Shown: piece after piece, positions 6,622 to 56,772 of the stretch | Layout: each line of letters begins with the position of its first letter | Numbering within the stretch: position 1 is the first letter of the stretch | From: Ruditapes philippinarum | Lineage: Eukaryota | Length of the DNA stretch: 64,000 nt | Direction of reading: 5' to 3' | NCBI RefSeq assembly: GCF_026571515.1 | Contig: NW_026860906.1 | Coordinates: 1 to 64,000, forward strand | The notes under the pieces: model-generated | Told to the model about the DNA's origin: nothing | What the model saw: the letters and a program-made list of their open reading frames with translations, nothing else | The model's database searches: none | Position numbers and translations under genes: made by a program

Positions 6622-7836
6622 AAAAGCGTGTAGAAACAATTTATTACATAAATAGTGACAATAGTGACGGATTATTTTAAAAAAATAAAAGGTTTGTGTT
6701 CAATTTCGATGGCACCAATAGGTCTTAAAGGGTACCACTTATTTTGTAAAAACTTGGTTTGAGTTGAAAACAAGAACAAACTTGAAATTAAATATAAAGC
6801 ATGTACGAGTATTTTCCTATTACAGAAATGTATTAAAATCTTGGAAATCCTTATTGCAATTGTTGTATTTGAATAAAAGAATATAAAGCTATGTTTTGAA
6901 TCTGCAATTCTTCTTTATTATTTGACAAGTTCAATTTTTTTCTTGAAATATCTGCCAGGTTTTAAATGAGACTATAATTCATACTGTGTTACCTGTCGTG
7001 TTGTCAAATTAATGTATAGAATGGTCATCCCCATTTATTTTTTTTAAATTTTTATTTTATTTTAGTTTTGTTGCCTAGGATCATTACTCTTATTTACATA
7101 AATACCTCTTTCGTTTTTGGGGAGGATAGTTGAGTTTCTATATAATGGCGACCCATGAATCAATAACTAATGAACAATTATAGCTTTCAACTTGAAAAAG
7201 GCCTATTTTGTTTTTGGCGCCAAAGATGAAGGTAAATATGTCATGGAATACGAAAAGTGTTTCGTTTTGATAAGTTAAGAAAAAATGTTCCCACATCCTT
7301 CAAACTTAAAAAAACTATTAAAGAAAACAAAAGACGTAATCCGAGATATAATGTTTTATATTTATGTTTCTGCGCCCGCAGATATGCTACCGTGTTTTTG
7401 GCTAATACATATCAACATCAAAACGTTCGATAATTCTTTTGCTATACGGGACTGGCATCCCCTTATACTAAACATGTATCCTCGTAGCAGTATTTGGCAG
7501 GAGTGTTCTTCTTAAGTGGATAAATAAACTATTCCTACTTGCATGATATAAATGAACTACAAATATGCAGTTATTTGTAAAGGATTATAGAATGGAGTGA
7601 ATATGGTGATATTTAATGTGTGCACACTTATAGGTGTTACGCTAGAAATTACTTTGATGTTGTTTGTCTAGATTAGTATATCAAATGTTGAATGTTGAGC
7701 TGAATGTCAATTTTTATGCTCAACATGGGAAATATTAAATGTCTAGCAATGTTGACAGCCTTTTTTGGATACCTTTGATGTTGAGTTGATGTTGTTTAGC
7801 TTTCAATATTAAAACTGGATATATATAACTAATTGT

Positions 7837-10506
7837 CACTGCGGTATACCGTACCCCGGATATTGCTCGATATAATGAGGACTTTCATTCCATTTCGCGA
7901 CTTTTAACGAGGAAAGAAGGTAAGTTCAGTGACGATATTTAGTAATTTTGAATTGGTTTGATATAAATTTTTTAGAAAAACAAATACTTCGATATTTTTC
8001 CTAGTTACTGAAAACCCAAACATATTGAAAAATAGCTTTGAAAGGTAATTAGGAGGTAAAATTCGTCTCTTTGCTCACGTGATAAATGAGCTCGGATCAG
8101 TCAAATTTGATGTTTTTGTGCATATACCTCCTTAAAAGAAACAATTGAATCGAGTGAAATGTGATAATGATGATAATATTTATGTTGTAAATGTTCAATC
8201 AACAATAGAACCTCAGATGACAGTGCATTTTGAGAATAAATACACATGTCAGTGTACCGAGTATTGCGTTGGATATACCCGCCGGTGTCACGAGTATATG
8301 TCCAGAATAGGCAGAGTTCGGGGTACTTTACTGGTCTGCGAATAATCCAGATTTTCATTCCTGCTCATGAAAAACCTCAGTCGAACAAACTCAGCAATTT
8401 TCTGTGTTTACAAAGTTCTCGTTGCTATCGAAGGATCAATCTGTCCAGAATTTGTTAATGATTATTGCATATCTTACTTTAAGTAGTAAAAAATGCATCC
8501 AAGGTGCATTAATGCTGCCTCAAGATTGTCAATAGTAGACGGTATTGAGCAAGCGTTTGTCACGGTTCAGAACTGTTCACTAATTCCCCGGACCCTTGGA
8601 ATACCGTATCGCAGCTCTATCGACTGAGCTATCCGGCCGCTTACACATTATCACCCCGAAATAGTGAACAGTTCTGAACCGTGACATGTGCTAATATCTA
8701 ATATCAACCGACTTCCTACTATGCCAAAAATCCATATAAAGGTAACTTTCTGTCATTTTGCACCTGCACTCTAGCAACGGCAGACCGTCTGCACGTGAAA
8801 TTTGTTACGTCATTAGCAATCAGTTACCGTATGGCTGCCGAGCGGGTACGGCTTAAAAAACCCGAATAATGGATTTTAATAAGATTATGATAAAGGGCAG
8901 CAGATGCAATAAAAAGGTTTTGTTCCTTATAACCTTTCATGTCATAAAGGCGTGTTTTGAAGGCTTTACCCCCACTCCTTTTGAGGCCTCAAATAGTGTA
9001 AAACATGCGCTATTTAGGCCCAAAACACTGGTTTTTTCGTTTGAAAAATGTTGTTCAAAAGAGTGATCACTTTTTCGGCGCCCCCTGCCCCCCCCCCTTT
9101 AAAGAGGTACATCAAGAATTTGCCAAAGGGGGATGTGTCCCCTTCTGTTTGAGGGTTTGAAGTGGGGCAGTAGAGAGAGAATTTGGGACTTGTGGGGGGC
9201 TAAAATGGCCTCAGGTCGATTTAAAGGTACCATGTTATCAACGCCGAAAAGCCTTATACTTTATCTCAATCAATTGAGAAGTTGCTGCACCTTGAAATCA
9301 GTTTTTTTATGGAAAAAAAAAACAACGCAAAATAGAGATTTTGGCAATTTTGAGACGTCCCCCCGTTGCCATGGTAACTGGCATGCTGTTCCACAGGCTA
9401 TGGTCCAGCCAACATCTGTGCCCAGTTTGATCAGTATTGGAATATTTTTATAGTTTCATAGCAGTTTGAACTTGTAACAGGAGTCTTAATTCAATGAAAA
9501 CAGCCATTTTTTGCTTTGCAATATGCTTTCGCAGTAAAATGTTAAGACGATACCGACATGCTTGGACGGCATAAGCCCGCGGGCCAATATTTTACTAAGT
9601 GTGTCGATATGTTTCTTAAGGCAAACTTGCCCTGTAAAAACCTATTATTAATGTCATCTAAATATGTTTTTTATTCTACTTCTTTTCAGAGATGGGTCTC
9701 CTTGATCACAGTTTCTTGAGCATGTATTTAAAGATTTTTATCGTCAATTTTGATGGTTCTACCCTGCTCCCGACCCTGCTTCCGACCCTGTACACACTTT
9801 ATTTCATCCATAGTGTGATTTTCAATCAAATGGGAAATATAATCTCTGTATTTGCCCGTAGAAAAAGAACAGTAATAACACTGAAAATGCATTGTTAAAT
9901 CTGAAATATTTGAATAAATATCATATAAACAATATATTATCATCAAAATAAAATGGGATCGATAAACAGACGTAAAAATAGACAAAAATATCGATTTTCA
10001 ATACTAATGTGCTCATTCTGTTTTGCAATACACTGTACACTTAAGTTGGGCTATTTTGCAATACTCTGTACACTTAAAATCAATACTCGGTACACTTTCT
10101 TGTATCTTTTTTGGCCTGTATCTTTTTGTCCTTTCACACTTTTTGCCTGAAATTTGGACAAAGCATACTTGGATTGTGAATAAAAAAATTGCTCGATTCA
10201 TTCTTTTTTATATTGGTAACATAATAATTTCTAACGATTCTACAGTATCGCGGTCAGTATTTTCTAGTGAACAGCGGATCGTTTAGGGGTAGTTTAATCA
10301 ATTTTACAAATACCTGTTATACTTTTATGTCTTTTAGAGCTACAAATATACCTCTAGATATATAAAACCCGTTTAGATAAATGAAATAGCCATTAGTTTG
10401 GAAAATATCGTCGCTGAACTTACCTTAGATCCCCGTTCAAAGTCGCGAAATGGGATGAAAGTCCTCATAATATGGAGCAATATCCGGGGTACGATATACC
10501 GCAGTG
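7837..10506. mobile_element. Non-autonomous DNA transposon, about 105-bp TIRs starting CACTGCGG, 5-bp TSD ATTGT (Transib-like signature)
   Basis: Left end cactgcggtataccgtaccccggatattgctc... matches the reverse complement of about 10403-10506. ATTGT at 7832-7836 and 10507-10511. No transposase recognised inside. Confidence 0.85.
8558..8686 (-). mobile_element. Short tRNA-derived element bounded by TGTCAC...GTGACA (related copies 32085-32219, 48199-48342, 48424-48530)
   Basis: 25-bp inverted ends tgtcacggttcagaactgttcacta. Internal ggccggatagctcagtcgatagagc resembles a tRNA 5' half with an A box. Confidence 0.7.
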
Positions 10507-13477: not shown

Positions 13478-15510
13478 TTAATGAAATGTCACGTATCTGT
13501 CTGAACGGATATGCGCACTCATACCAGATATAAGCATTGAATTAACTGTAATGTTAAAATCTGAACCTCGAATCAAAATATCCGGAATATCCACGCATGC
13601 GCGTGAGAGTAGATATGGCGGGACGTCAAGCGCTTCTATCGTATACGTATAAAATTCCGAAACTGCCTTGTATTTCTCTAAAGCATCATGCACTTCAAAC
13701 AGAGCCTTATAAATATGCCACTGTGGAAACTTAAATTCATTGTCATGGATGTTGTGTTTAAACTGAATGAGTCCCCAACGATGTTGTAAATGCATGTTGA
13801 AGGCATCGCATGGCTGCCAAGACCACCACTTCCAGTAAAACGATGGCCCTTTTTCATATTTTCCATTTCTCACAGTTATATTTGGTTGGGACCTCCCTAG
13901 CATAGTAGGCCATACTTCATCTTCTATTGGTGCATCATGCACGCGTTGTGAACCTTCCGAGAGTCTCTGAAAGGGTAAGGCCATTTCAACTGACCAGAAT
14001 TTATCAATATCACCAGGCGTGTTTAGTGTTCCTTCGAAATGTACAGAATAATTGGACGTTGAATTCCATGACAGGTCCGACGCACTCTCAAAGCTAGTCT
14101 CATATGGCGATTTAAACATAAGAAGGTCTAGTATTGTTCCTAAAACATTGATATCGATTTGCTTATAGTTAAAAGAAAACCCATCAATACCAAGAAGAAT
14201 TTCTAAACTGTTTTCACTGTATATTGCTGAATCGTGTACGTCATTTGTTGCCCACAGATTATTTTCTTGCAGGTATACACCAATATATAAATTATCGTTG
14301 TCCCATCTCATTTTAAACTTTGTATCATAGATTGGTTTTCCGTATATGGTACTTCTTATGTCTGCAAATGGTTCACTCCATGGGACCTGTGCAAATGATA
14401 TGTCATTTAAATTTCTTTAACTAAATTGTTATGAACCTATTGCTTTACAAATATTTTGTGTTCTTGAAACATAAAATTGTTTGACAGACTTTTAAGCAGC
14501 TAAAGCTTGTATTCAGTGTAAAATAAATCGATCCTTTCCAAATGAGAAATGAATATGTTAACATCAAACGTTTTACAGCAGCATTATCAGTTATTTATCC
14601 GTTATAGAGTACAAAGATACACAGAAATAGTAGCAGTTTACTTATTAAATGAATGAGTCGTGAGTTTTATGAAGAAGTGTCGCCTTGTTTTACTTAATTA
14701 AGCAGAGATAATAAACCTTTTTTGTTTAATTGGTTTCACGAAGCATATGGCGGTGAAACAGGAAAGATGAGTTTGTCTAACAACGGGTGTTACAAACTTC
14801 AAAGCAACAAAAGAGGTCTGAACCACCTCATCAGCTGGAGCTAAGACATGCATAGTATCCATTTAGGCGCCTCTTACGATCACGTGCGGTTAAACGGTGG
14901 CTTTTGTTATGCCTCAACAATTGAAACCCTTAGCCACAGGGGGCGATAAATGTGAATTATGTGAAAGTGCATAATATTTAAATTCTTAACATAAAAGCCC
15001 CTTATTGCTTTGCAAAATAAAGTAGTTAATTGTATTGTTATTTAACCTATTTTGTATAGAACTCAGTATTTTGAATTAAATTTGTAAGAATAGAATTATA
15101 CTAGATAATTAAGTACAGTTACATACTTCATTCCAAGCTTCGTCGTCTAGTTTCCCATCTATTTCGATTTTTTTATCATTCAGATGATTTACAAGATATG
15201 TTCTTGGAAGTCCATAATTCCAACACTCTTCTGAACTATGTATGCAAGAAAACATCTTATCCTGCCGTTCAAGGAAACGTTCTAGATACACTTTCCCGGT
15301 ATCAGTTTCAACAGATGTTGCACTGCATGAAGTCCGCATTGCTTCAATAACATTATTCGGAGACTCAATGCCATCAAATATGGTATTAAACTTAATAACC
15401 ATGTAACCTGTCGTTAAGCCAATTGAAAATGCCACGAATACAATTATTGTGAAAATGACACAGCCTTTCCAAGTTTTTGCCTCATTTTGAAGCAATTTGC
15501 AGCAAAGCAT
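13478..15510 (-). CDS. Type II membrane protein with CBM9-like (DOMON-like carbohydrate-binding family 9) domain, paralogue A, about 430 aa. Exons 15510-15127 and 14386-13478
   Basis: GAA|gtatgt ... gcacag|GTC joins IDGKLDDEAWNE to VPWSEPFADI in phase 0. N-terminal TM GCVIFTIIVFVAFSIGLTTGYMV. Motifs PRTY, IDGKLDDEAW, KMRWDNDNLY, GTLNTPGDIDKFWSVEMALP and WQP...NMH...RWGLIQF are typical of bacterial CBM9-like proteins. Confidence 0.85.
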
Positions 15511-17311
15511 TATTCCGACTTTTTGTTGATTTTTAAATTAAGAAAATAACTGAATTACGACATGCCTTGGTCTGCTCCTTAACTGAGCAAAATGATGAAG
15601 GGACTTTGTTTAATAATGACCAATTCAATAAAAGATGAAGATAATATTTCATGTAGTACTTCATTTCGTGATAAATTGAAATTATTTTCCTCTATGAGAC
15701 TTCCTTCTTAATTGTATGACATTGTAAATTGACACATTGATGACAAATTTGCCAGGCAACATCGTCAGCTAGTGTGCGGTTGCCATGCCATTTGGCAAAT
15801 AATCAGTTACATACTAATAATAATATCATGCTGACCTCACAAAGACACTTTATTTTACTAATATTAAGTTTCAGTCACGTTGATAAATCACATTTTAAAA
15901 CAATATTTCTCCTAAATTTCATTTCAATGATACCCAGCTAGATCAGTTGTTTTTAATGAACATTTTGAAATATATTTTCCGAGTATATATTCTCTTGTTC
16001 GTTACTTGAATGAGTATTATATTCCATATCATTGTAAAATTATATATAGAAACATAAACTTTGTTTTCCATTACAAATAAAACGTTCTAAGTTAATCAGT
16101 TATATCAAAGTTCATCGTGGCAGTAAACTTTATGACAAGAAATTAAAGAGCCATCTAGCCTTAACAATGCTATCATTTTTATATTTTAAGAAGAATTTTA
16201 TTGTTGGTGTCCTGATATCGTTTCTTTCCAAAAATACATCTAAGCCATCTTATGCTCCCTTTGCGTTTTTTTTTTAATTTTTTTATTTATTTTATTTTAT
16301 TTTATTTATTTTTTTAAGTTTAAAGTGTTTCAGTATTTTGTAGAAGCGAAAAAACCACTTTGTTTACAGTGGGTTAACTTCATCAAAAACTATTTCACAT
16401 TCAACGCTTTTTTGTTCAGGTGATAAGCATTTCACATGCTCTTAAGTCCTAATTGCAACATCGTTAAACACATGTTTGCTCTATTTGCATAAGGACACCA
16501 ATTTATTCATTTATGAGGATTAATGTGCCTTGAATGTGGAAAGCTGATCATTTGCATTATTTTGTTAAGAAAATTAACTACCTACCTTATACTGTTGCAA
16601 CATTAACCAGATCTCTACTTCATTTTGTTTAAATGACGGATTTGTATAATGCGAATTCTGAGTGCCTATGAATACCAAATACGATAGGTTAGTGTGAAAA
16701 AAAACTACGTCCTGAACTAACACGAAATACCTTTTGATAAGGTTTTATGCTTCATTCTAACCTTCCTGAGACCATAAATTATTATTCTTTTCTACCAATA
16801 TATAGTTAGTCTTCGCTTCCGAAGCTCTTTCTGCTGGCAACTTAATTTTCTGGTATATTGATATTAAAATCCTTTAGACTTCGAACTGACTCTTGCAAAT
16901 TCAAATTTTGACAAGTTCATTATAGAAATAGAGCGGGTAATAAAGTTGTTAAATCAGAATGACATGTAATATCTCTCCAGTATCGAGGAACAACTAAATG
17001 CATTTAAATTCTGGCTACGGGATAAAGGTATATTAATTATTTTGAAAAAAACTAAGTAAATTGAAATATTGTTTTCCTTAAAAAAATATCAGTTTTTTTT
17101 TCCAAAAAATAGTAAAAAATTCAATTGTAAAAACATTATTATCCGCTTGCATAAAGTACATGATAGAGTGCCTTAAGATTATTTGTAAGTCAATGATTTC
17201 ATTGAATCAAAATGAAGGATTTAATATACGCTATGTCTTCTCGTTTTAGCGTTTGTAGGTAACTTGTCTAAGACATATTCTAAATATATTAAAAGGGAAT
17301 TCCTTCCTAAA

Positions 17312-19059
17312 TTACCACATCGTAACAAATTTATCGGATCGTATGTACGCAGGAGGGAAATCAAATACCATAGATCGAACATTTATATCGAAATCAGCTT
17401 GACTTCTATTCTCTCTCATACTTATTTCCGGTACATCTACGCATGTGTGAGAAAGCAGATACGGTGGAATGTCTAGTTCCTCCAGAGTACTTGCGTACAC
17501 GCCATTTTTTGCTTTGAATACCTTCATAGCCTCAAGGACATCGAACAAAGCTTTATAGATGTGCCAATTTTGGAACTCGAATTTTCTATCTGTATTGGTT
17601 CTCTTAAATTGCACTAAACCCCAACGGTCTTGTAAGTGTAGATTAATTGCACCACTTGGTTGCCACGCCCACCATTTGCCTGAGATATTTGGTACTATCT
17701 CATATTGTCCGTCCTTAGTCAAACGAAGTACATGCTGTGTTCTTGCCAACTGCAAGAACCAAACTTCGTTGTTATTTGGAGCTTGTTCCACACGATTCGT
17801 CATAATAGCCAAAGTTTCGAACGGGACTGAAATTTCAACAGACCAGTATTGATCCCTGTCACCAGGTGTGTTAATTGTTCCTGGTGTGTACACGCCAACT
17901 GTAGCATTAGAATCCCACTTCAGGTTGTGCACTAATTGCCCTGGAGCATCGTAATATGATTTCTTCATCAATAAGTCCGTTACTGTGCCTAAAACATTAA
18001 CATCTATTTGCTTGTAGTTGAAAAGACTGTCATCTGCAGCTATAAGTAAACTGAAGCTATTTTCGCTCCATAGCTCGGAGTCGTTTGATGTTTTAGTTGC
18101 CCATAAATGATTGTCCTGTAGGACAGCGGCAAAATACAGATTATTGTCATCCCATCTCAATTTGAATTTAGTATCATAGATAGGTTTTGGGTATACTTCA
18201 CTGCGAATATCGACAAACAACTCGCTCCAAGGTACCTAGAAATAAAATGTCCAGTAAATTATTTGGTCGGTAGTACTTCGCAGCTACGTGAAAATTGAAA
18301 TTTTCTTTCATTTTTTAGTAATTAATTTAAATCATTTAAAAATTTATTGCGTCAGAATATGCAATGTTTTTCATAATTGTAACAAAATCCGTATATTTTG
18401 GTATTTCATTAAAGACTTGCGCAAAGTGTGTCAAAAGCAGTCAGTTATGAAAAGTAATTAAAAATTTATTTCTCTGTTTATACACCACAACCCGCATAAA
18501 AACCAATGCCATTGAATTTCTGGAAAGTGCTTAACTTCTATTTTTATTGTATTATTGTACATTGTATGTATTATTTCGCGCCAACATAATTAATCATAAA
18601 GTTTTAATTCTATTTGCAGTTTCAACAAATGATAAAAAAGGTTGCTTACAAAAATTAATTTAAAGTATTAACATAACAATTATATACCTCTGTCCATGCA
18701 TCGTCATCAACTTTCCCGTCAATTAATATTGACTTCATGTCAAGATGATAAGCATTATAATTTCTAGGAAGACCAAATCCCAAACATTCCTTGCGGGAGT
18801 TTACACACGCGTGCTTTTTAGAAAGAACGTTCTTTGAATAGCGCGCGTCGAAATTTCTCCCAGCCTGTGTTTGTACTGTAGTAAACTTGCAGGGAGCGTG
18901 AGTGCTTCGCCTTTGTCTAGATAGAGAAGCTGTTTCTTTGATTGTATCAACGTTGGTCCTGCTTGTAAAATGTCCCAGCATGATCCCGAGTGCAAATAAT
19001 CCAAATGCCATTAGCACATGTTTGGCAGTGTGTTTATAAGAGCAAGAATCCATCGCCAT
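17312..19059 (-). CDS. Type II membrane or secreted protein with CBM9-like domain, paralogue B, about 431 aa. Exons 19059-18688 and 18235-17312
   Basis: GAG|gtatat ... ttctag|GTA joins IDGKVDDDAWTE to VPWSELFVDI, the same intron position and phase as paralogue A. TM VLMAFGLFALGIMLG, RQRR furin-type site, same motif series. Confidence 0.85.
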
Positions 19060-22149: not shown

Positions 22150-22878
22150 AAAACTCTTGTTGCTGTAAATGGTTACTAGTACATTTGTGATTGATACCGT
22201 GGCTTACGATACGGAATATTGCGTAATGAAATTATTATACTATGTAACCACTACTTACTAGTTCGTAAATTTAAAACACCACTCTTCTCATTCAAGGAAT
22301 AATTATGTAATACGATTAGCTACTGACAGAAACCAATAAGTGACATTCTCGTCGTCTTGAACTCGAGACAACCAATCAATAGCTAAATTGCAAGTAACCG
22401 AATCAGTTCAAAAACGTGTACATTGTTTTCACGATTTCTTACGTAAAATCATTTGCTTATGTTTTTGGGGGATGACAATTTTTTCAAAACATGCTGGTTA
22501 TACCTGGTTGACAAAGTTTTAACTGAAAGTCCATATCTGCTGAAAGGTAAATCAGAGTTGGTTACATGAGAAACGTCAGAAGATCGGACAGTTAGCAACT
22601 CTTACATCTGTGTGATTCCTGACATTGTGAGGGCTATACTTAACGATAAGTTTACGCTTAACTTACTTAAGGTTGTTCTACATGATCAAATATTAATAAT
22701 GTGAATATGTTGGCCATTGATCTGTAAGCAAATAATACTTGGTGAAAGTTCAGACCGACTAACCGAACAAACTTATAAGATGCTGAAACCGTATATTAAA
22801 ATCTTTCAAACACACAGAAAGGCAAAAAGTATAATTATTTTTATTTTGATACTTTTATTTTCTAAGAAACATACAATA

Positions 22879-25800
22879 CTAAGCTCTAGGTTTTGCTGTA
22901 GGAGTTACGTTGGTGCCCCTAAAAAGTCTCCGTACAAAAAACACTTGTATTCCTGAACACATTATGACGACGACGCATTGACAAATAGACCACGTTTGTA
23001 TATACGAATTATTGCCAGTAATTAAATACCAGTCTTTTATAACATGCATTCTGCTCTGTGCTTGGTGAACCAAGGCGTCCTTGACGGACTCATGTACATT
23101 TTGTATGGACACCTGAAACGAAAAAAAATACAAAGATTTAACGTTTTAGATTACTGATTTGTGCAGCACTTTATGTATTATAGAATTTGCAAGACACTTG
23201 GCTGAAGGTTCAGGGTGTTTTTACTCTGTATGACTGATTTCTATATGTTTAATGTTGCCGGCTGTTTGCTAGCGATCAGACGACTCTTAACAAAATTCAC
23301 TTGTTTTTATCGCGACGTTTTGTCAAAGTCCTTAAATAGTTATAAAGGCGAACACAACAGTTACTGTACAATAGAATCTACTTAAACTGTGCATTCTTTT
23401 AAAATATGGCAACAGAAAAATTTAAAGTAGGGTCACTGATCTCGTTTAAGAGTTATCTTCCCTTTATGTAACTGTAGTATACGTATGTAAACTGCGACAA
23501 AAACAAAGCCAGAGAAAAGCCACTTTATTGTAAGGGCATTTGAAACAACGGGGGAAAACAGACATGTTTAAAATTACACATATGACAAAACAAAATCGCA
23601 CTTTGTTAATTTGTAGAGTCTTTTTTCATGCATGCCATTACTTAATTACTAATCGGGCAAAATTAAATCTATCGCACCTTGACATTGTATTATTTGTAAG
23701 AAACAAAATGTGTTCATTTAAATAAACCATAAAAACCACATAAACCACATCGGACATCAAAATAAATTGGATAATGTGAAAGTAGAAGAAGACGTTTAAA
23801 GGTATTTCTATTTTTAGCTTTAGCGGCCCCTAAAAGAGGCCAATCAAATTAATATGAGCAAAATTGATAAAAAGACTCCCTAAGAATGTTACAGACAAAT
23901 TTTGGTGATCATCCATCAATTGGCTCTGTAGAAGAAAATGTCTAAAGGTTTTTCTATTTTTAGCTCTAGATACCCCTAAAAGGGGCCAATCAACTTAAAA
24001 ATGAGCTAGCAAATTTGATACAAGACTACCTAAGAATGCAACAAACAAATTTTGATGATTATCCATCATTTAATTTAGTAGTAGAAGATGTTTAAAGGTG
24101 TTTTCTATTTTTAGCTCTGTTGACCCCTAAAAGGGGCCAATTGAAATCGCATGACCAAATTTAATTTGACTGTCACAAGGATGCTACAGACCAAATTTGA
24201 GGTAAATCTGCCCAGTAATTTCAGAGGAGAAGACGATTGTTGACGCATGATGACGGACGCCGGGCGCCGGAGTATCACCCTTCGGTTCTAATAAGCTAAT
24301 AAAAAAACGCTTATTAAAATTTGCTTAGCAGTCGCTGACTCTGTGCTCGTTTGTGTCAAAATGCGCCGCTTCCGGGTCGCTGTACTTGGTCCGTATTCTT
24401 TATAAACTAAGATGTCTTTGGAACAACGCATCCCCTGTTTCCCCTACATAAATAAAACGTTCGCAACGCTTACGGAAATGTTAAATATATCAAACGTACC
24501 GTAAAATTTGAGACAGTTAGTTCGACTTCTTCTATTTCCTGTCTATATTTAGACCATTCTTCCTCCACATAGGTTACGAGAAAGACATACACCAGCTTGG
24601 ACGCCATTCGAGACATTGTATTGTCTAAACATATTGCATAAGGACCTGTAAAACATGCGGACAAACAAATAATATTGATGCTGAATACCTTATGTATATA
24701 GGTATTTTGTGTAGGAAAAATACTAAAATTTATAATTAATTGTTTGTTACATCTAAAAAAAAGTATCTATTCTGAAAACAACGAAATTGACAAAGCGGTC
24801 ATTAGTGTGATTTTTTTAAACAATTGAATCATTACATTTAATTTATCTAATATAGGCAAATTTAGTTATTCAATTATATGTTTACTTATTAAATTATATA
24901 AGAACAATACGACAAAGGGTGACATAAGATTAAGATTAAGATTATTACAATTTAACATAAGCCTTAAAATACGTCGATATTTACATTCTAGAATTAAGTT
25001 AAAAAGAACAAAACTAATTTTATAGTGAAACAAGGTTTTGCTACTGAACAGTCATTATACTATAGCGCTTTTGCCTGGTACGAAATAACAAAACGAGGTT
25101 GAATTGGTGATAAAAAAACAAAAGAAATATAAATGAATAAGGTTGAATGATATAAAAGCTCTTTGTAAATCACTGCATACTTTATATCTTTGTTAAATAA
25201 ATTGCATGTTTAATATCCCTAACTGTACAGGCTTGAAGGAAAACAAGACATTGTTATAAATGAATCAATCAGACTATCATGCATCATCTTCTTAACCACC
25301 TCTATAAACTGGGGGCTGCCAAACGCCATCGATTTCCTGTTCCGTCATAGGCCTTCCCTCGGCATAGAGGTTCGTGTCCAACTCGGTAATCCAGCGGGGT
25401 CGGGTGCGAGCTTCCTGTAAAACCTGACCGGAAACACCTTTGATAGTAAAGTCAAGGTACTGATCACCACCCCTTAACACCTAAAAAGCCAACATCAAAC
25501 CATGTACCAATTATCATGCTCCATTACCATAGAAACACACACATATATAAATAATACATGTAAATAAACAGTGCTTTCTTTAAAACATAACTCAATAAAT
25601 TATTGTAATACATTTACTGGTAAATGCAAAATGACTTGCTGCTTGACGTACTCTTAAATAAGTATTATATGCTACTAGATTCACAAATTTTAAGCATAAC
25701 TGTTCTTTGTGACATTGACTTCAAATCAGTAAACATGAAAGCTCATTTAGTGTTATCACATTTCCTTATAGTAGAATATATATGTATTAATAAATAATGA

Positions 25801-28800
25801 GGTGACTATGTACTTACTTATGCAAATTTGAATTTATCTTATATAAAAATTTAGTGTAAAATCAATATTGTTAAAGGCATAAAAGGAGAGTGGAAGTATT
25901 GTGTATGAATGTCCTTAATTGCTGGGCATTTACCCTGAAACTGTGAAACACCTGTATATTATTAGTTATTAAGAGTTTTGACAAGTTATATAGCGTTCGA
26001 GTTATATTGCAAACAACCATTTATATGCGGCCATATAACCTGTCAAGAATACTTATAACGAATTTATTTAATATATATAGTTTATATAAATGTCACGATT
26101 ATCCAATCAAAATCAATGTTACAAACGTGTATAATTATAAATTGTAGGAAAACACCGAAAAGAAAAGACGCTGACCAGGAAAAAGGTGGGGCTGTGTTAT
26201 GAACTGTAACCCATGAGAATACTTCTACAATTAGAAAAAGGCGGGATGAAATACCAGAAAATACCCTGAAAGGCACAAGACGACAGACGGAAAGGCGGGG
26301 TTAATGATGGGGCGGAGTGAACTTGTTTTTACCGGTCTGTTCAAATGGTCCATATTGAAATCCCCCACGTGCAATATGATCGGTCTTTTGGAGGATATCG
26401 AACTCAGTACCTTCTTCCTTAAGTAAGAATAGGGCTGCGTTACCATCTCCTCCCCGAAGGACCTGAAGTTTATTCTGTGCCATTAGAAATTAATAGCAAG
26501 CTTTCTTTTATAATGCTAACAAATGGCGGTGTAAGATTAATCAAAAGATAAATCCTGGACGCAGTTAGATGTGATGGATTGTAGTACACTTAAAAGAAGC
26601 TTCACTGAGGTCAAAAAGCCTAAGAAAAGTTTGACATTCTTACATAGATCAAGTGAAGTACGAACAGTTCTGCAAAGAATAATAAAGAAATATACTCAGA
26701 ACTGAATTGAATATCGATTTCTTGTGAAATGTTTAGTCCAATTTTTTGGACGATAAAAATGATTATTCGAGAATAACATCGGATGAGGGAAGTCATTAGT
26801 CCAGACCTTCATGAATTGGAACACAAATATAGCAAAAAAATTATTTCCAGTCCCGTTATGTCAAAAACCTTAGTGAAGTCCCTTCAAGTAAAAGATACGA
26901 AATTATGTGCATTAATTTTTTCAGTTTATTGCTTAAACTTCGCCCAGTTTGTTGCTTAAACTCCGCCCGATCTGAAAGGTGAAATTGGAAACTTCCCTGG
27001 GTTTCAGACAATATCCAGTATTAACATATAGGGGTTAAATAATGCTTTATTTACCAGTCTCAGTAAAATCTCTATATTCGAATCCACCCCCTGTCCCAAT
27101 TTCACTTTTTTGGAGAAATTTCAATGTTGAGCCCTCTGGTTTGAGTAAATAAAGTGCAGCTAGGCCATCGCCGCCCCGCAATACCTACAATGTCATCGTT
27201 GAAGATACACTGGTGACCTTATAAATTAAAGATGTTTGTTCCCAATTTAAATTTAAAATTACAAATTTAATAATAAAATTCAGAAAACGTGAATAGTTTT
27301 CTAACCTTTTCAGCACCATGTACTAGCTCTCTACAAGCAAATGTTACATTACAGCACTTAACCCAGTACCGTAATGTATGTCAAATGGTGTTTCTTTGCA
27401 CTGAATAATCGTAATGTATATAAAATGGCGTTACTCTGCACTGTATTACCGTAATGTATATAAAATGGCGTTACTCTGCACTGTATTACCGTAATGTATA
27501 TAAAATGGTGTTTCTCTGCACTGAATTACCGTAATGTATGTAAAATGGTGTTTCTCTGCACTGAATTACCGTAATGTATATAAAATGGTGTTTCTCTGCA
27601 CTGAATTACCGTAATGTATGTAAAATGGTGTTACTCTGCACTGAATTACCGTAATGTATGTAAAATGGTGTTATTCTGCACTGAATTACCGTAATGTATG
27701 TAACATGGCGTTACTCTGCACTGAATTACCGTAATGTATTCAAAATGGTGTTACTCTGCTCTGAATTACCGTAATGTATGTAAAATGGCGTTACTTTGCA
27801 CTGAATTACCGTAATGTATGTAAAATGGTGTTACTAAAAATTGCATTAAGAATTATTTAAATATAAAATTTTCAAATTTATCTGCCAACAGTGAAGATTA
27901 AAGTCAGCCTATACTGATGTGCAAGATGGCGAAACTATATTAAAGTTGTAACTAACGAACAATGTCATTGTGTCATCCGGGTGATAAGGTTGGCCAATGA
28001 TATCATATGTAATGATTCACGTGAATTCTTATCATCTCGTACCGGAAGTATAGCTTTCACATCTGTGACGCAGGCGTCATAAATAAAAAACTAGATGCAC
28101 TTATCAACATCAAAATTTCTTTAAATATCAGAAGTCTGTAGAATATTTGTTACAGTGAAAAATGAAGCACTGAAAATAAAAGTGTACTCGTGCAACGCAT
28201 GCTTCATTACAATATGTAAGAGTTATATCCCTTGATTAGAAATAAGCTCTTGTACCAATGTTAGTATTTTTATTTAGTATTTTTATTAATTTCTATACAT
28301 AAATAGTGTATGTAAAGTCATGCATTCTTTTCTTTCAGAGTTATCGTTCTTTTACTGAAAACAACTGAATTGAAGTATTTGTTAACCGGAAGTGACAAGG
28401 AATTCAGCAAGTGAAGTATCAATATTCCATAGAATTACCACAGAATATAAATTATTTGAAATAGAAAATTCAAAAAGAAATAAAACGTAAAAATCGTTAA
28501 TAAAATCTGACTAAAGCTGCTTAACAGTGACCATTCGCTTCATATGCTAAGCTATAAATTCATTTGTGAAATGCCAGTTTAAAGAACGACAACTCTGTAC
28601 TACTGACTGACTTATTTACCGGTGAATTGAGCATGATGCATCAGAGTACCGACCCCTTGATACTCAACACTGTCAATGTATCCTGGATTTACTGGATTTC
28701 TTAAATATGCATTTATTCTCGTATCCCCTCCATATATTACCTGACGAATGAAATATGAAGCTTATTTGATACATATGTTATATTCGTGTCATTTATCATC

Positions 28801-31800: not shown

Positions 31801-32922
31801 CGCATTTCATTATAAAAAGCGTATATAAGTAAAGGCCTCAACAGACGGTAGGATTTAGCTGTACAGCACTAATTAGAGATAAGATGTACAATTTTCAAAG
31901 CTATACAACACTTGCATTCAGACGGTAATTCTATACTGTAAGAATCTTCTGAGGTTTCCCCTAAAAAGGATCCCTTTACATTGATCCTTTACATACTTTA
32001 CTCACTTAATACTTTTTTTCGCCATGAGTAATGATTGAAACACCTCCATTAAAAAAAATATATATATAAATTTTTTAATGTGAAGCCTGACCGAGACTCA
32101 AACCTGGGACCCTCGGAATACCGTACTGCGGCTCTACTGACTAAGCTATGTGGCCGCCTTCAAACTTAACCTCCCCTCCCTAAATTCATGTTATTAGAGA
32201 ACAACTCAATACCGTGACATAATCATTTTCGGAATAATTTGGGATTCAAACACAACACAACTTTGGGTCTCCTGAAGAGTTTTTCAACATCATTTTTACC
32301 CAATCTTACTACTATGTTTACCTTTTAGCCCTAATTGTTCTGGAATTTCATTCATTACATCCATTATCAGGAGATAATTTGCTTATCTGTTACTTGTCAT
32401 TGTGGGAGGTCTGTAAAAATCGGTACGACAAGATTTTCAAAATAGAACATGTCCTATCCCTTACATCTCGACATAAGGTTTCCGAAATTAAGAAATAGTA
32501 GCCTTCACACATTAAGATTTGTCTGTACATCTTAGTTTTAATTGGTGTTGTACTTCAAAATCCTACCGTCTGTTGAGGCCTTAACGTATACGTTTTACGT
32601 TTTACGATACGTTAACGTACATGTAATGTTTACATTAAGGTAAAAAAAGGAAACATTAGTAAATAAACTTACAAAAGGTATAAGTAATATAAACAAAAAA
32701 TCTACAAACCTCGAATGATATATGAAGTTTACCACCGGCCACTATTTTTTGATAAAAGCATTCTTCTTTACCGGCTCCTACTTCTATTTTAAACTCATGC
32801 TGGGCTCCTGGTAGCCCGTCAAAGTCAAACTCATCCGTTTCCGTGCCCAACACAACCTCCGCCCATCCCTCGGGCCACAAAATGCTAAAAATAACGTTTA
32901 AGAATAGAACGATTTTTGTCAT
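22879..32922 (-). CDS. TMED6: p24/TMED family GOLD-domain cargo receptor (TMED6-like, p24 gamma), about 240 aa. Exon 1 32922-32710, one of four alternative exon 2s, exon 3 24645-24500, exon 4 23112-22879
   Basis: Signal peptide; FKIEVGAGKEECFYQ...LHISFE|VLRGGD...G|PYAICLDNTMSRMASKLVY (GOLD domain with both Cys); coiled coil; WSICQCVVVIMCSGIQVFFVRRLF TM; tail KPRA. All junctions GT-AG with compatible phases. The subfamily call is by recognition only. Confidence 0.9.
23740..24298 (-). mobile_element. Degenerate HINE-like element with internal tandem units, in TMED intron 3
   Basis: Three recurrences of ttctatttttagct...cccctaaaaggggccaat, gacggacgcc microsatellite, agctaa terminus. Confidence 0.65.
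25297..25480 (-). CDS. TMED6: TMED alternative exon 2d (184 nt, or 181 nt if it ends at 25300): VLRGGDQYLDFTIKGVSGQVLQEARTRPRWITELDTNLYAEGRPMTEQEIDGVWQPPVYR(G)-G
   Basis: ggctttttag|GTG. Both possible donors (G|gttaag, G|gtggtt) are phase 1. Open frame. Confidence 0.8.
26333..26462 (-). CDS. TMED6: TMED alternative exon 2c (130 nt): VLRGGDGNAALFLLKEEGTEFDILQKTDHIARGGFQYGPFEQT-G
   Basis: acttcag|GTC ... ACC G|gtaaaa. Open, phase 0 to 1. Lies within ORF 26301..26483. Confidence 0.88.
27055..27184 (-). CDS. TMED6: TMED alternative exon 2b (130 nt): VLRGGDGLAALYLLKPEGSTLKFLQKSEIGTGGGFEYRDFTET-G
   Basis: attgtag|GTA ... ACT G|gtaaat. Open, phase 0 to 1, 24/43 aa identical to 2c by hand count. 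Not in the ORF track. Confidence 0.88.
27368..27836. repeat. Minisatellite, 40-bp unit, about 11.7 copies (taccgtaatgtatgtaaaatggtgttactctgcactgaat), between TMED exons 2a and 2b
   Basis: Direct reading; contiguous units without spacers. Confidence 0.95.
28620..28740 (-). CDS. TMED6: TMED alternative exon 2a (121 nt): VIYGGDTRINAYLRNPVNPGYIDSVEYQGVGTLMHHAQFT-G
   Basis: ttcgtcag|GTA ... ACC G|gtaaat. Open, phase 0 to 1, homologous to the other variants. Not in the ORF track. Confidence 0.85.
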
Positions 32923-49291: not shown

Positions 49292-49531
49292 CTTATTTAC
49301 AATATCCCCTGTATGTTTTGTTTGATTTACAATATTCCCTGTACGTTTTGTTTGATTTACAATATTCCCTAAACGTTATGTTTGATTTACAATTTCCCCT
49401 ATATGTCCTGTTTGATTTACAATATTCCCTAAACGTTTAGTTTGATTTACAATTTCCCCTATATGTCCTGTTTGATTTACAATAATTATCTCCTATATGT
49501 CCTGTTTGATTTACAATAATTATCCCCTATA
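49292..49531. repeat. Minisatellite, 30-bp unit (tgtttgatttacaatattcccctatatgtcc-like), about 8 copies; resumes at 52156-52190
   Basis: Direct reading; the array is interrupted by the element at 49532-52155. Confidence 0.9.
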
Positions 49532-52155
49532 CACCGTAGGGAACGTGTTACAGTATCGCGTTTTTCGGTTACAGTATAGAATTTTAAAGATGGAGGATTA
49601 TTTGTTGAGAGGACAGGTAGGTAATTTTTATTCCGGTCCATACTACAAGTAGTTTAGTGTCTAAAAGATGTTTTGTGCTTTGCTTGTAAGGAACAGAATC
49701 CGGTATCTAGTCATATATTTCTTCAGACTCTGCACCGCAGATTTATCGTTATATTGTCTCAGAAATATGCAGATTTGACTGTTTGAAAATTTGAATCGAG
49801 AGACCAACGCATTTTCTCCAATTTCGACAATATTTATGCATGCCTAGAAAAAGTAAATCTGCAAAACGTTAGTCCTTTATGTTAGGAAACGTTTATAAAA
49901 GTTAATGACCAGTTGAACTTATTTTCCTGTTCGTTAAATGCGTTTTAAAAAATAAACAATGTTACAGTATAGAGCGAGGTGATTTGTGCAAGGTTACAGC
50001 ATAGACCTAGCGATTTTTATCCGATTTTGTTACAGTTTATACTCAGATTTCTGTTACAGTTTAGACTTCGATATTTTCTATATATACTAGGTAAAATGTA
50101 TGAATGTTACATAGACTTTTAAATCTCTGTGAGCTTATTGGCCCGGTGGCTATTCGTTCGTCTGTGTGTTCAATCTCATCCGCTCAGTAACTACTTGGCT
50201 AAATGTGATGACATTTACATGACTTTCTAACAATTAGTTGTTCAAATATATGGTTTCGCTTGCAATCGGGGATACGAAAACCCAAATTATAGATTTTGAA
50301 AAAGGCAATGTTTAAAGACCCTTCTCGTCTCGAACCAAAAGCATTCAAATCAAATCATGATCATGGCGTCATTTCGAATGCTTCTAAGTTGAATTTACGA
50401 TTATTTTGTCATTATTAAATTAAAAGTCGTTTTTTCTTATTTCAGACATTCTGTATAGCAGTTTTCATGTTTCTGAAAAAGAAAATAATATTGAAAGTTA
50501 TAGAGTATAAATTAAGGTCAGACAATTACAATATCTTCTCTAGTGAGTCTGATGGAGGTACATAAAAGTGGCTGAGTCCGGATAAGGCCGTCGACTTCAA
50601 ATTATCTTTCATTTACTGCTGTAGTTGAAATCCAATCATGACTTTGGATTCTTTGTATGTGAGGAATCTATCAAGGTAATTTACGGAAGGTCGGTGGTAT
50701 AGTCAGGTGCCCCCTCGTGTCTGAAATGTTCCACAAAGGGATTATGTGTCTTTCTTTACACTAAAGCAGGAATGTTTTCACATGACCTCAGTGTCGTTGA
50801 AATTTAATCCCTAAGAAAGCCAAACGTAACAAACCCTTTTAAATACATACAAAATACATTATTGTAGATGGAAATTCCAACTTGAAATAAAATTTAAGGT
50901 TGAAATATTGCTCACTTAAATACTGTTTAATCATTCTTAGGGTATTGCCTGCTTGTTAATTGTGTCTTTTGACAGCTTATCTATGGTATGTAAGCTTCAT
51001 AACCTCCGATCCCCTCTCAAAATTTCATTTTATTTAGTTTTTAAAGCACACGAAGTTTTTAACCTGGGTGTAATATGTCGCTTTTCATAGAATGGCAATA
51101 ACGTGCCACATTGAAGGTTTCATGATAACCGCCATATGAACACATCCACAGATGTTAAAAAATCTAAAGTGTACCAGTTCATGTTTAATGTGAATTCTGC
51201 TGAAGCCGGTGCTAGGAGGCGTGGACGGTAGCTTGCAGTTACCACTACCGTCCCATCAACAGGTTTAATCAAACTGAGCCTGCAACATTTTCATATTTTC
51301 CGTGTTGGACTTCTGTTAAGGATTCTTTTTTCTCTATTTTATTACTAATAGGCATTATTATAATGTGTAATGAAATCAAGCAATAATCTTTCTTCTCTCA
51401 ATACAATTCGATAAAAGTTACTGTTGTTGTCGCGAAAACAGTCCTTACTTAGGACATTACTTATACTGCAAAAAGTCTCAATCTGAAACTTAAAGTAAGA
51501 AAAATAGCAAACTATAACTATTCTGCTGAAGAAAAAAAGTAATACAACCTTTCAAGAATGTATAAAATAGAAAGGTATGAGTTATTTCATAAAAATAATG
51601 GATACACGAACTTTGTTTGAAATTTGGCAAGTATCTAAACTGTAACCGAAATCTGGGTATATACTGGAACAAAATTGTATCAAAGTCGCTCGGTCTATAC
51701 TGTAACCCTGCAAAATTCACATCGCTCTATACTGTAACAGTGTTTATTTTTCAAAAGCATTTTACCAACAGGAAAAAGGGTTCAACTGGTCATTTACTTT
51801 TATAAACGTTTCTAAACACAAAGGTCTAACATTTTGTAGATTTACTTTATCTAGGCATGCTTAAACAATGTCGCAATGGGGAAAAATGCGTTGGTCTCTC
51901 GAATCCAATTTTTAAACCTTCAAATCTGCACATTTATGAGACAAAACAGAGATAAATCTGCGTGTGCAGGGTCTGAAGAAATATATGACTAGATACCGGA
52001 TTCTGTTCCTTACAAGCAAAGCACAAACACATCTTTTAGAAACTAAACTGGCCTGAATAAAATTCACCTACATCTCTTCTCATAAATAATCCTCCATCTT
52101 TAAAAGTCTATACTGTAACTGAAAAACGCGATACTGTAACACGTTCCCTACGGTG
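49532..52155. mobile_element. Non-autonomous DNA transposon with TIRs of about 550 bp starting CACCGTAGGG, 5-bp TSD CTATA (Transib-like signature)
   Basis: caccgtagggaacgtgttacagtatcgcgttttt... matches the reverse complement of about 51600-52155. CTATA at 49527-49531 and 52156-52160. Confidence 0.88.
50565..50830 (+). mobile_element. tRNA-derived SINE, probably MetaSINE-type (fragment also at about 63605-63670)
   Basis: gtggctgagt..g.taagg head and tacggaaggtcggtggt...caggtgccc central domain. Confidence 0.6.
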
Positions 52156-53845: not shown

Positions 53846-56772
53846 TGAGGTCAGTAGGTCAAAGGTAAAGGTCACTTTTATCTTTGTCACTAAAAACATG
53901 TAGAATACATAACAAAAACTGTAAAGAAAATCGAGAAATTACTGTCGATCCCGAAAAACTCATGGATATCATAAAGCGGGAGAAAAGCGGCACCTAACTA
54001 TAGATAGATATAGACCATTTTACAGTACGATTTTTCCATAGCAACGTATGTTGCATTTCGCGCATGCGCATTCTGCGTAGAGCAAAAGCTCAATAAAGAT
54101 AGAATACATTTTAGTGTACTTAAAGGCTTTAAAAAGCGTGATTCACCCAGAAAAAAGAAATTTTGGGATGAATTGAAGCGGTAAGTACTTAAAACGTGAA
54201 TTGATATTTAAAACAGATACACAAAATTAGCGGGACTTACAATTCAACGACCAAAACTTAAAGTCCACTGTTCAAGGTATCATTAGGTGACTTTTTCATC
54301 AGTAATTTAAATTAAAACAGCAGGGTGTTAAAGATCACATTTTTTTCCATGTATTACATAATATTACACAATTGATATTCCTTTGAAAGTGGATTGGCAA
54401 GGCGGTTAGTGTCAAAAAGATTGACACGTTACCGGTTGTTATTTGCCAGCTAGTTTATCATTCAACCGGGTCGTTTTAGTAACATGACATAGTTAATTTC
54501 TTAAAACTATGAACATGATTAATCGTAATTTAAGTAACTTTCATTTATACCAATCTCATCAATGTTTATTGATTTTGTGAAGTGACAAATAGTGTACGTG
54601 TCGTGCATTTCCATGTGTTACAAGGAACCGGATAAAATGTGTGTTATTCCACCACCCATCTTAACTTCTCAAGAGTTTAGAAAATTATTTAAATATATAT
54701 GTGACTTAAAATATATAACACGCGTTCCGACTTTTTTCAGAATGATAATTAACCTCGATTTTAAATGTTATAAAATTTATATTAAATGTTATATATAATT
54801 ATTTGTTAAAAAAATAGTTTTTATATGGACGATTTCAATAACAATTAAATTGACTTCTTTATTTGCTAATATATATAGTTCAACATTTTTTTACAACAAT
54901 AATTTCAATGTCAGGTCAGTGATCGTAAGTCGATAGTATGTTACAGGCTATATGAAAATAATGCAGAATGCTACGTCATGTGGACACGTACAAATTTACC
55001 CGTTTATTTGCCATATGGAACATTTGCTATTCTGTTACAGAATAGGTACACCACATCCTCTCAAATTCATGTCCTAAAAATGGTAACATGTCAAGAAGAA
55101 AATGCGAATGTAAATATAGCCTATTGCCTCGACTTAAATTTTTATCCGTGTTACACCGATACTTGAACATGTCTATTTACGTCTAGCATACAGCCATATT
55201 TTAATTAAAAGCCCATTATACCCCAAGAAAGGTATTTTTGGTATATTTATTTCTCAAAATCTTTCTATATTTGATGTCCTGTTCAGGATTTTTTTTAAAA
55301 AGTTACTCATTGGTCGATTACCCGTACAATACCCTGCTTGAATTGATTCTTGCAATACGTACAGCTACAGTTGTTAAATATTCTGTATGGAATAAAAATA
55401 CTACTCTGTTTACATTTTACTTCTTAAAATACAATTATTTTCATTTTCAGCACTTTCTCCGGGTGATAGCATCTAACTATTAATTAAACGTTACAAAACT
55501 GATGCTTTACTCATGTATGTCCTTATCAAGAAAGAAAGTTGCAGAGATATTCTTTGAAAGATAATGTTAATATAACATTAAAATTACAAGAGCACGGTTC
55601 AACCACCACATCGTTCCTGGTTAGACTGTCAAGCAGTTTACGTGTACTTGTTGAATTTTCTTTCGCAAGGAACTGATATTTTCTGTACATGCCAGAGCAG
55701 AGGTACAGTGCGAGTGACCGTAGAAAGGATTTCATACTCAATCACAACGAAAGTGACATGTATCCTCCGGGAATCAAACCCGGGTCGCCCGATTCACAGT
55801 CCAAAGCTGTACATAGCTGTTGAGCTAATCGGACGGCTGTTCGACTGGCGATTGCGTATGACTTTTATTGCTATCGGAATTCCTTTGTTTTATAGCCGAT
55901 AAGATGCGACTGACTGTCCATGGCGTTTTGATACTCATAGAGTTTTTGGCGCCAAAAAAACTAAAAAGTGTTTTGAACATTTTTAAAATTGTTGATGTGT
56001 TTTAGAAGTGGCATATGCATGCATGCTAGCGTACTGTATGTAATTTAATATAAACAATAATAATTATATGATGTTTAATTTCCTGTATTCAAGTATGTCT
56101 ACTTTATGAGATTCTATATATATTATACTTATATAATAACCTTATTAGATCAGTATTTTTATACTATATCCTATCGTGAGATGTTAATTACTTCCTTCTT
56201 TTCAAGATGACACTCAGCCTCTTCAAAGTCCCAGCCACTGTTTCCCGGGGTGTGGCCTTGATTGTACACTTAACTAGTGCATACTTTAAAAGCCTCAATA
56301 AAAAATATGCGGAAAATCTCGTTAAGCTCTATCAAATTTATCAATTTTCACACGCCCACGTAGCCAACTCTTAAAAATTAATTACAAATGAACAATTTCG
56401 AATCAAATAATTAAATTCATTTTATTAATATGTGGAGAAAAGAAACTTTTATAAAGTATACGTCTTTATAGAATTAAATTTATTTTATTCTCGTTAACTT
56501 AATTATATACATGTGAAGGAGTTTATGCATGTAAATCTACTAAAGTATAAATTTAAATTCTAATTAACATTATTTGAAAATGCAGTGCACTGTTTTAATC
56601 AATACATACTTTCACGTTCAAATTGTTTTGACTGATTAAATAATTCACTGTACATGTACAGGATTTCGTAATTTAACAACTTTACGACTAGCTATGTCAA
56701 AACTCATTCAGAAAATATTTTACCTGTCTGGGAAAGTAAAGGTTAAAGGTCAATATATCTGTCTAACTATAA

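Follow-up and report, generated by a model that had tools for sequence, protein, structure and literature searches.

The p24/TMED gene of Ruditapes philippinarum, which codes for a cargo receptor of the secretory pathway and is located on the minus strand of the 64-kb window (the whole stretch of 64,000 nucleotides analyzed herein), consists of exon 1, one of four homologous copies of exon 2, exon 3, and exon 4. The gene is of the gamma type, and its four copies of exon 2 are very probably ancient tandem duplicates, among which splicing makes a mutually exclusive choice. The exon array is real and old, and is shared with other bivalves.

The coding part of exon 1 (32710..32922, minus strand; ATG at 32922-32920) ends in phase 0 with ..HISFE in front of a GT donor at 32709-32708, and codes for the signal peptide and strands beta1-beta3 of the GOLD domain, the first conserved Cys included. 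Its product is identical to the N-terminus of the RefSeq isoforms X1-X4. Exon 3 (24500..24645, minus strand; 146 nt) is entered in phase 1 and left in phase 0. It opens with the GT that completes a split Gly, followed by PYAICLDN, and codes for beta7-beta8 together with the second of the conserved Cys residues (..ICLDN..), and also for the first part of a long helix. The phases of both junctions were confirmed as first described. The coding part of exon 4 (22879..23112, minus strand; stop codon 22881-22879) codes for the coiled coil, the transmembrane helix, and a tail with the end ..KPRA. A paralogue on another contig is alike in its four-exon layout, but includes a single exon 2.

Between exons 1 and 3, the variants are arranged on the minus strand in the order 2a (28620..28740; 121 nt), 2b (27055..27184; 130 nt), 2c (26333..26462; 130 nt), and 2d (25300..25480; 181 nt with the RefSeq donor), forming a cluster of tandem homologous exons of the same phase, each with its own splice sites. 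All four are open, are preceded by AG and followed by GT, start with V-[LI]-[RY]-G-G-D, and are 3n+1 in length. These features agree with the preliminary description, as do the exon boundaries except for the donor of 2d, which had been placed at 25297. The use of that donor would make exon 2d 184 nt long, while a donor at 25300, located 3 nt upstream, also leaves the length at 3n+1. Because RefSeq X1 and its counterparts in Mercenaria and Mactra read a single Gly in ..YR/K-G-PYAICLDN, the donor of exon 2d is most likely at 25300, directly followed by GT. All the splice sites of the cluster are GT-AG, and the introns between the variants range from 592 to 1435 nt in length. The pyrimidine tracts at the acceptors of 2b and 2c are poor. 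Within a species, the identity from variant to variant is 20-57%; the 24 of 43 residues that were said to be shared between 2b and 2c were counted again (55.8%). What sets exon 2d apart is an extra stretch of about 20 residues, inserted between the strands beta6 and beta7. Pfam search with each exon-2 variant alone gave no match because the variants are too short and too divergent.

RefSeq already models a set of six isoforms, X1-X6, for this gene, under the labels of both '5-like' and '6-like'. Exactly one variant is included in each of X1 (2d; 257 aa), X2 (2c; 240 aa), X3 (2b; 240 aa), and X4 (2a; 237 aa), and these proteins, XP_060552554 to XP_060552557, are otherwise identical to the sequence of the 64-kb window. 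The use of one variant per productive mRNA is seen at the level of RefSeq models, and the frame arithmetic agrees. The other two models, XP_060552558 (X5) with 2c+2d and XP_060552559 (X6) with 2a+2d, are double inclusions in which the frame is lost. Both begin at out-of-frame ATGs, X5 at 26446-26444 within 2c, and X6 with MLNSP at the 3' end of exon 2a, read out of frame. The proposal that one gene makes four mutually exclusive, frame-tied variants of the GOLD core is supported by the single-variant models X1-X4 and the frame-broken models X5 and X6.

The RefSeq models might owe some of their content to projection from the aligned proteins of other species. Since protein projection would not yield non-productive forms, X5 and X6 suggest transcript evidence for the donors of 2a and 2c and for the acceptor of 2d. 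Of the four variants, 2b is the least supported in Ruditapes, being absent from both X5 and X6. No spliced Ruditapes transcript of the p24 gene was found among the Logan-derived proteins, and screening of the protein collection with a four-variant profile gave only unspliced genomic ORFs (2c-/2d-like) and no spliced fragments. The RNA-like runs contain 10-17% of the words of 22400-28800, a word share by which the variants are not separable. A share of this size is compatible with expression, and would be accounted for by exon 4 with its UTR together with exon 3 and one or two of the variants.

The relationship to the p24 family was examined by comparison with profiles and structures. On the Pfam profile PF01105, exon 1 covers positions 1-29, exon 3 positions 75-122, and exon 4 positions 119-182, exon 4 alone giving 34.1 bits, over the cut-off. 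The gap of 45 positions left on this profile gives room for an exon 2 of 40-60 residues, and the RefSeq isoforms carry precomputed PF01105 (EMP24_GP25L). Sequence search of PDB gave TMED5 (E 9e-15), TMED2 (5e-10), and TMED1 (8e-8; GOLD domain only), and Foldseek ranked 5gu5 (gamma2) at the top, followed by 7rrm (gamma1). The best fold matches (5gu5, 7rrm, and 5azw) are all p24 GOLD domains. TMED5 and TMED1, the nearest of the solved relatives, both belong to the gamma subfamily. Based on the PDB sequence search and the Foldseek ranking, the gene is of the gamma-type of p24/TMED.

In the structure model of X2, eight strands are located within residues 40-141, followed by one long helix (residues 142-227), and the GOLD domain was modelled with pLDDT of 84-88. 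In this model, exon 2 accounts for residues 72-114, which span the last part of beta3 and the strands beta4-beta6 of the eight-stranded GOLD sandwich. The exon-2 insertion of 2d was modelled as a low-confidence loop. Cys55 and Cys120 do not vary among the 52 sequences compared. Across the isoforms, the disulfide stays constant, and so does the beta1/beta2 dimer face, as placed by the arrangement of strands in the GOLD domain of TMED1 (bioRxiv 10.1101/2021.02.13.431076). The earlier suggestion that the disulfide, coiled coil, transmembrane helix, and tail are all shared by the isoforms is supported.

The array is conserved beyond Ruditapes. One-to-one counterparts of all four variants are included in Mercenaria (hard clam), which belongs to another genus, with identities of 71-85% (Mercenaria X1 versus exon 2d, 85.2%; X2 versus 2c, 81.8%; X3 versus 2b, 75%; X4 versus 2a, 70.7%), and the constant parts are 87-94% identical between the two genera. 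A fifth exon-2 variant (X5) was identified in Mercenaria, for which no Ruditapes counterpart was detected within the 64-kb window. In Dreissena, Mya, and the scallops Mizuhopecten and Argopecten, the isoforms differ only between ..SFE and G.Y.IC.DN, and both Dreissena and Mya have an annotated isoform for each of the types a, c, and d. On the tree of variants across orders, the clade of d-type is supported at 97/94 and that of b/c-type at 98/87, and the X1 exons of Dreissena and Mya cluster with 2c. Between 2b and 2c, the synonymous sites are saturated (pS 0.78), with pN of 0.31. As judged from the sequences, each of the variants is maintained by selection, and the four-exon pattern is evidently not a product of chance, because the four exons recur one-to-one in another genus.

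As p24 diversity originates usually from gene duplication, and a paralogue with a single exon 2 is located elsewhere in the genome, the four exons might be considered as leftovers of tandem whole-gene p24 duplicates or as neutrally drifting pseudo-exons. Neither the 64-kb window nor the contig, however, contains a further copy of any of exons 1, 3, and 4, an observation that contradicts the origin from relics. In addition, stops and frameshifts are absent from the variants, each variant has its own high-identity one-to-one counterpart in Mercenaria, and every variant is joined to the same constant exons in the RefSeq models. Gene-duplicate relics are excluded by the lack of extra copies of exons 1, 3, and 4, and this explanation as a whole retains a negligible probability. 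It is also conceivable that only one or two variants are truly used, and that the rest are weakly spliced or represent annotation carried over from proteins of the relatives. The word share of 10-17% in RNA-like runs suits the use of just one or two variants as well, and the poor pyrimidine tracts at the acceptors of 2b and 2c point in the same direction. Against this, the frame remains open and the splice sites remain intact in each of the four variants, and their counterparts in another genus remain 71-85% identical despite the saturation of synonymous sites between the paralogous exons; with variants conserved to this extent, non-use is hard to reconcile. The non-productive X5 and X6 would imply transcripts rather than projection, and the separate annotation of types a, c, and d in both Dreissena and Mya also argues against such a reduced repertoire, which we consider highly unlikely.

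A different question is how the exclusivity is set. In arthropod Dscam and 14-3-3zeta, a docking site pairs with one selector per variant, and competing RNA structures of this kind, with the reading frame and nonsense-mediated decay as a backstop, might operate also in the p24 gene. The introns of 592-1435 nt are too long for steric hindrance, the GT-AG character of all the sites makes splice-site incompatibility unlikely, and the choice of one out of four variants is easier to explain with a further mechanism. However, in the 500 nt that follow exon 1 and the 500 nt that precede exon 3, a crude k-mer search (exact pairing only, one species, places 25532-25568 masked) detected no shared docking site that pairs with the flanking sequence of at least three variants beyond the level of shuffled controls, save one AT-only 8-mer. 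The annotated double-inclusion transcripts also speak against strict control by RNA structure, and we regard this explanation as unlikely.

The preferred reading is mutually exclusive splicing of four exon-2 variants, in which the reading frame would act as at least one guard of exclusivity. In every productive mRNA, exon 1 would be joined to exactly one variant, and this variant to exon 3. As each variant is 3n+1 in length and is joined to a donor in phase 0 and an acceptor in phase 1, the frame is shifted when no variant is included, and likewise when two or three are. The double-inclusion mRNAs corresponding to X5 and X6 would give only N-terminally truncated products without signal peptide, and these transcripts would presumably be cleared by nonsense-mediated decay. 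The products of the switch would be four type-I membrane proteins of 237-257 residues. Common to all of them would be the signal peptide, the strands beta1-beta3 and beta7-beta8, the bridge between the two Cys residues, the coiled coil, the transmembrane helix, and the tail. The difference between the isoforms would be confined to beta4-beta6 and the intervening loops in the middle of the cargo-facing GOLD domain, corresponding to approximately 40% of the GOLD sandwich. The variants might provide the p24 complex with different luminal binding properties, and might stand in for the role of the five separate gamma genes of vertebrates. The variants may, as proposed at first, switch cargo specificity, possibly by tissue.

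A wider and more tentative possibility is that exon 2 represents a recurrent hotspot, through which a single gene supplies bivalves with a repertoire of cargo receptors. The types a, c, and d may already have existed in an ancestor common to Venerida and Myida, and scallops may have three types of their own. Each type may present a different luminal binding face, composed of half of the concave sheet (beta4-beta5) and the edge strand beta6, and the long, conserved, and probably flexible insertion of 2d may serve as a dedicated binding loop. Cargo classes may then be sorted by type, for instance in the mantle versus the gill or haemocytes.

The ligands of the p24 GOLD domain and the subunit that sets the specificity are still poorly defined. 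Evolution kept four isogenic receptors in Ruditapes, and five in Mercenaria, among which beta4-beta6 in the GOLD domain of the gamma subunit is the sole difference, and the retention of variants with this difference alone marks GOLD beta4-beta6 as the part under diversifying use. For pull-downs and trafficking assays, the four isoforms would provide a series of swaps that is ready for use. The choice of exons, instead of gene duplication, would represent a second route to gamma-subunit diversity, for which the isoforms pre-exist in automatic RefSeq gene models.

In kind, the array is an ordinary cluster of mutually exclusive exons and not a new mechanism, but is the first that we can find in a p24 gene. 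A search of the literature did not turn up mutually exclusive exons for any p24/TMED gene, although absence is not proven thereby. The earlier statement that such a cluster had not been described holds with respect to papers, but RefSeq already includes separate-isoform models from at least six species of bivalves. The clam array is similar to known frame-incompatible clusters (PMC5740500; reviewed in PMC9013439 and PMC9741552) in that homologous tandem exons of the same phase code for the same part of a fold, and that lengths not divisible by three lead joint inclusion to shift the frame, making exon-joining transcripts non-productive. In the survey of human mutually exclusive exons, candidates with exon-joining reads were counted as verified when the lengths are not divisible by three (PMC5740500). 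The p24 cluster is different with respect to the number of exons, four (five in Mercenaria) versus two in most known clusters. The comparison made at first with Dscam holds as to the exon array, since in the exon 4, 6, and 9 clusters of arthropod Dscam1, too, an array exchanges a portion of a binding domain with beta-sandwich fold and leaves the remainder of the receptor unchanged. It does not extend to the docking/selector pairing of RNA and the tens of variants of Dscam1, whereas the clam gene has four variants, no pairing detected by the k-mer search, and frame incompatibility available. Mammalian Tmed2, a member of the beta subfamily, is likewise a p24 gene with regulated splicing, being included among the trafficking genes of which splicing shifts during development (PMC5840707, PMC7532667), but neither tandem homologous exons nor a swap of the GOLD core is described in these two reports. 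The p24 subfamily with the most members is gamma (PMC10620864), and the vertebrate gamma proteins (TMED1, 3, 5, 6, and 7) are similar to the clam isoforms in having a signal peptide, a GOLD beta-sandwich with the beta2-beta7 disulfide, a coiled coil, a transmembrane helix, and a short tail. The Ruditapes tail with the end ..KPRA is different in type from the vertebrate tail. The diversity of vertebrate gamma proteins comes from separate genes, whereas bivalves place three to five GOLD cores within one gene and keep the rest of the protein identical.

The p24/TMED gene lies on the minus strand, where exon 1 extends from the ATG at 32922 to 32710 and ends with ..HISFE in phase 0 before a GT, exon 3 (24645-24500) starts with a GT that completes a split Gly followed by PYAICLDN and ends in phase 0, and exon 4 (23112-22879) encodes the coiled coil, the TM helix, and the tail. 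Between exons 1 and 3, four mutually homologous open copies of exon 2 were seen as claimed in the preliminary description, 2a (28740-28620, 121 nt), 2b (27184-27055, 130 nt), 2c (26462-26333, 130 nt), and 2d (described as 25480-25297, 184 nt), each preceded by AG, followed by GT, beginning with V-[LI]-[RY]-GGD, and 3n+1 in length. The frame shift expected upon inclusion of zero, two or three variants agrees with the exon lengths and phases. For 2d, the exon itself was confirmed and its donor at 25297 probably needs correction: based on the single Gly in ..PPVYR-G-PYAICLDN of the RefSeq isoform X1, as well as in the Mercenaria and Mactra counterparts, the donor is most likely located at 25300, giving an exon of 181 nt that is still 3n+1. 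With this 3-nt correction, the four-exon observation is confirmed. A minisatellite of about eight units, each of about 60 nt, is located at 27360-27860 of the window in the intron between 2a and 2b, and a tRNA-like (SINE-type) segment with an A/T-rich tail after it is located at 32090-32160 in intron 1. A tandem gene pair with long open exons (minus-strand frames of 307 and 312 aa) lies downstream of the p24 gene at 13478-19059.

RefSeq holds six isoforms for this gene, of which X1 (XP_060552554, 257 aa) carries 2d, X2 (XP_060552555, 240 aa) 2c, X3 (XP_060552556, 240 aa) 2b, and X4 (XP_060552557, 237 aa) 2a; on alignment, X1-X4 are identical to the window sequence outside exon 2. The other two are double inclusions, 2c+2d in X5 (XP_060552558, 224 aa) and 2a+2d in X6 (XP_060552559, 191 aa), in which the exon-1 frame is lost and translation in the models begins at a downstream ATG, with no signal peptide: X5 starts at an out-of-frame ATG within 2c and then reads 2d in frame, and X6 begins with MLNSP, the out-of-frame end of 2a, followed by 2d. 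From the way Gnomon builds alternative variants, we infer that these non-productive models rest on transcript evidence and not on protein projection. If so, the donors of 2a and 2c and the acceptor of 2d are used, and exclusivity at the splicing step is not absolute. Under published criteria for mutually exclusive exons (MXEs), reads joining the exons are compatible with MXE status if exon length is not a multiple of three (PMC5740500). The automatic names "TMED5-like" and "TMED6-like" of the proteins P0152-P0155 depend solely on the exon 2 carried, likewise in Mercenaria and Dreissena; because naming follows exon 2 within one gene, these names are uninformative on orthology.

In 17 RNA-like runs drawn from several studies, 10-17% of the words of 22400-28800 are present, consistent with exon 4 and UTR together with exon 3 and one or two variants. 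Among Logan-derived proteins no spliced Ruditapes transcript of the p24 gene was found; Logan contigs that are spliced and full-length represent a d-type relative (P0173) and the Argopecten X2 type (P0222, P0223).

With variants of 3n+1 in length, only single inclusion would be productive, and frame-breaking double inclusions such as those annotated would be removed by nonsense-mediated decay. An additional choice mechanism may operate on top of this frame rule. The introns between the variants are 1435, 592, and 852 nt long with GT-AG at all splice sites, and at these lengths steric hindrance between splice sites is not an option. A crude search in one species, with 25532-25568 masked, for docking sites close to exon 1 or exon 3 with complementarity to the flanks of at least three variants gave a negative result.

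Had the four copies been relics of whole-gene duplicates, additional exons 1, 3, and 4 would be expected; neither the window nor the contig contains a second copy of any of them, which speaks against this reading. The Mercenaria mercenaria orthologue has isoforms X1-X5, and all four Ruditapes variants have one-to-one counterparts there, with exon-2 identities of 85.2% (2d and X1), 81.8% (2c and X2), 75.0% (2b and X3), and 70.7% (2a and X4); a counterpart of the fifth Mercenaria type was sought in the window and not found. In the constant parts, the two species are 87-94% identical, and the variants within Ruditapes share just 20-57% identity with one another. Between 2b and 2c, pS is 0.78, with synonymous sites saturated, as against a pN of 0.31. 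Since identity is higher across genera than within the species and synonymous sites between 2b and 2c are saturated at a lower pN, the sequences indicate that the exon-2 duplicates are old and each is maintained by selection.

Multiple isoforms are also annotated in Dreissena polymorpha (three), Mya arenaria (three), Mizuhopecten yessoensis (three), and Argopecten irradians (two), in all of which the sole differences on alignment lie between ..SFE and G.Y.IC.DN, and a long d-type protein is present in Mactra antiquata. A tree of the exon-2 segment, which is weak with only 41 columns, recovered a d-type clade of Venerida and Myida (support 97/94), a b/c-type clade (98/87) into which the sole exon 2 of a paralogue also falls, and a weaker a-type group (88/82), while the scallop types formed separate clades at a base without resolution. 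Venerida and Myida belong to Imparidentia, and Pectinida to Pteriomorphia.

The paralogue (G000:C15633:6398-10150; RefSeq P0151, "TMED5-like") is located on another contig, shares the four-exon layout and the phases of the multi-variant gene, and contains one exon 2 of c-like type, confirming that the exon boundaries are old. Its intron after exon 2 contains a 114-nt minisatellite at about 7270-8680, and its Mercenaria orthologue (P0001) shares a 76-Mb chromosome record with the Mercenaria multi-variant gene. Elsewhere in the Ruditapes genome, a delta-like p24 gene carries a pair of homologous terminal exons separated by 1.9 kb (G000:C10880:575044-575205 and 576970-577125), each with a TM helix, a ..KKLV tail, and its own stop; these are candidate alternative last exons, use of which would exchange both membrane span and coat-binding tail. 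At another p24 locus (G000:C6556), homologous last exons 6.7 kb apart (49378-49596 and 56063-56299) are preceded by a single GOLD exon set (Pfam matches at 40581 and 42404), and are to be read as alternative terminal exons or as a partial tandem duplicate.

In an exon-wise search against Pfam PF01105 (EMP24_GP25L), exon 1 matched profile positions 1-29, exon 3 positions 75-122, and exon 4 positions 119-182; the exon-2 variants, too short and divergent, gave no score singly, and the 45-position gap must be the part that they fill. A structure model of X2, built on a 52-sequence alignment with GOLD pLDDT of 84-88, has strands at 40-48, 53-60, 64-74, 80-88, 91-97, 103-108, 115-122, and 131-141, followed by a long helix. 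In fold comparison, the model best matched the GOLD domains of p24 gamma2 (5gu5), gamma1 (7rrm), and beta1 (5azw), and the closest solved relative by sequence is TMED5, indicating that the gene is a gamma-type p24. Exon 2 (residues 72-114) corresponds to the very end of beta3 and to beta4, beta5, and beta6 in full. The GOLD structure of TMED1 consists of a concave sheet (beta2-beta7-beta4-beta5) and a convex sheet (beta6-beta3-beta8-beta1), with a beta2-beta7 disulfide and dimerization through beta1 and beta2 (bioRxiv 10.1101/2021.02.13.431076). On this layout, the swapped segment makes up half of the concave sheet plus the convex sheet's edge strand, and the dimer face and the disulfide (Cys55 and Cys120, both invariant in the alignment) are spared. 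In the X1 model, the additional residues contributed by 2d lie between beta6 and beta7 and are modelled with low confidence (pLDDT about 47-53), despite which this insertion is well conserved among Ruditapes, Mercenaria, and Mactra.

Altogether, the structural reading, in which a single gene encodes four GOLD cores and reading frame would keep them exclusive, is well supported. The variants may also, as the preliminary description proposed, confer cargo specificity and be used in a tissue-specific manner. The cluster is informative on where in the GOLD domain variable function may reside. In kind it is an ordinary MXE cluster, already captured by automatic annotation, and it appears to be undescribed for the p24/TMED family, as no report of MXEs in a p24/TMED gene was found in full-text literature searches. 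Mammalian Tmed2 appears in the papers found solely as one among several trafficking genes with a developmentally shifting splicing pattern (PMC5840707, PMC7532667).
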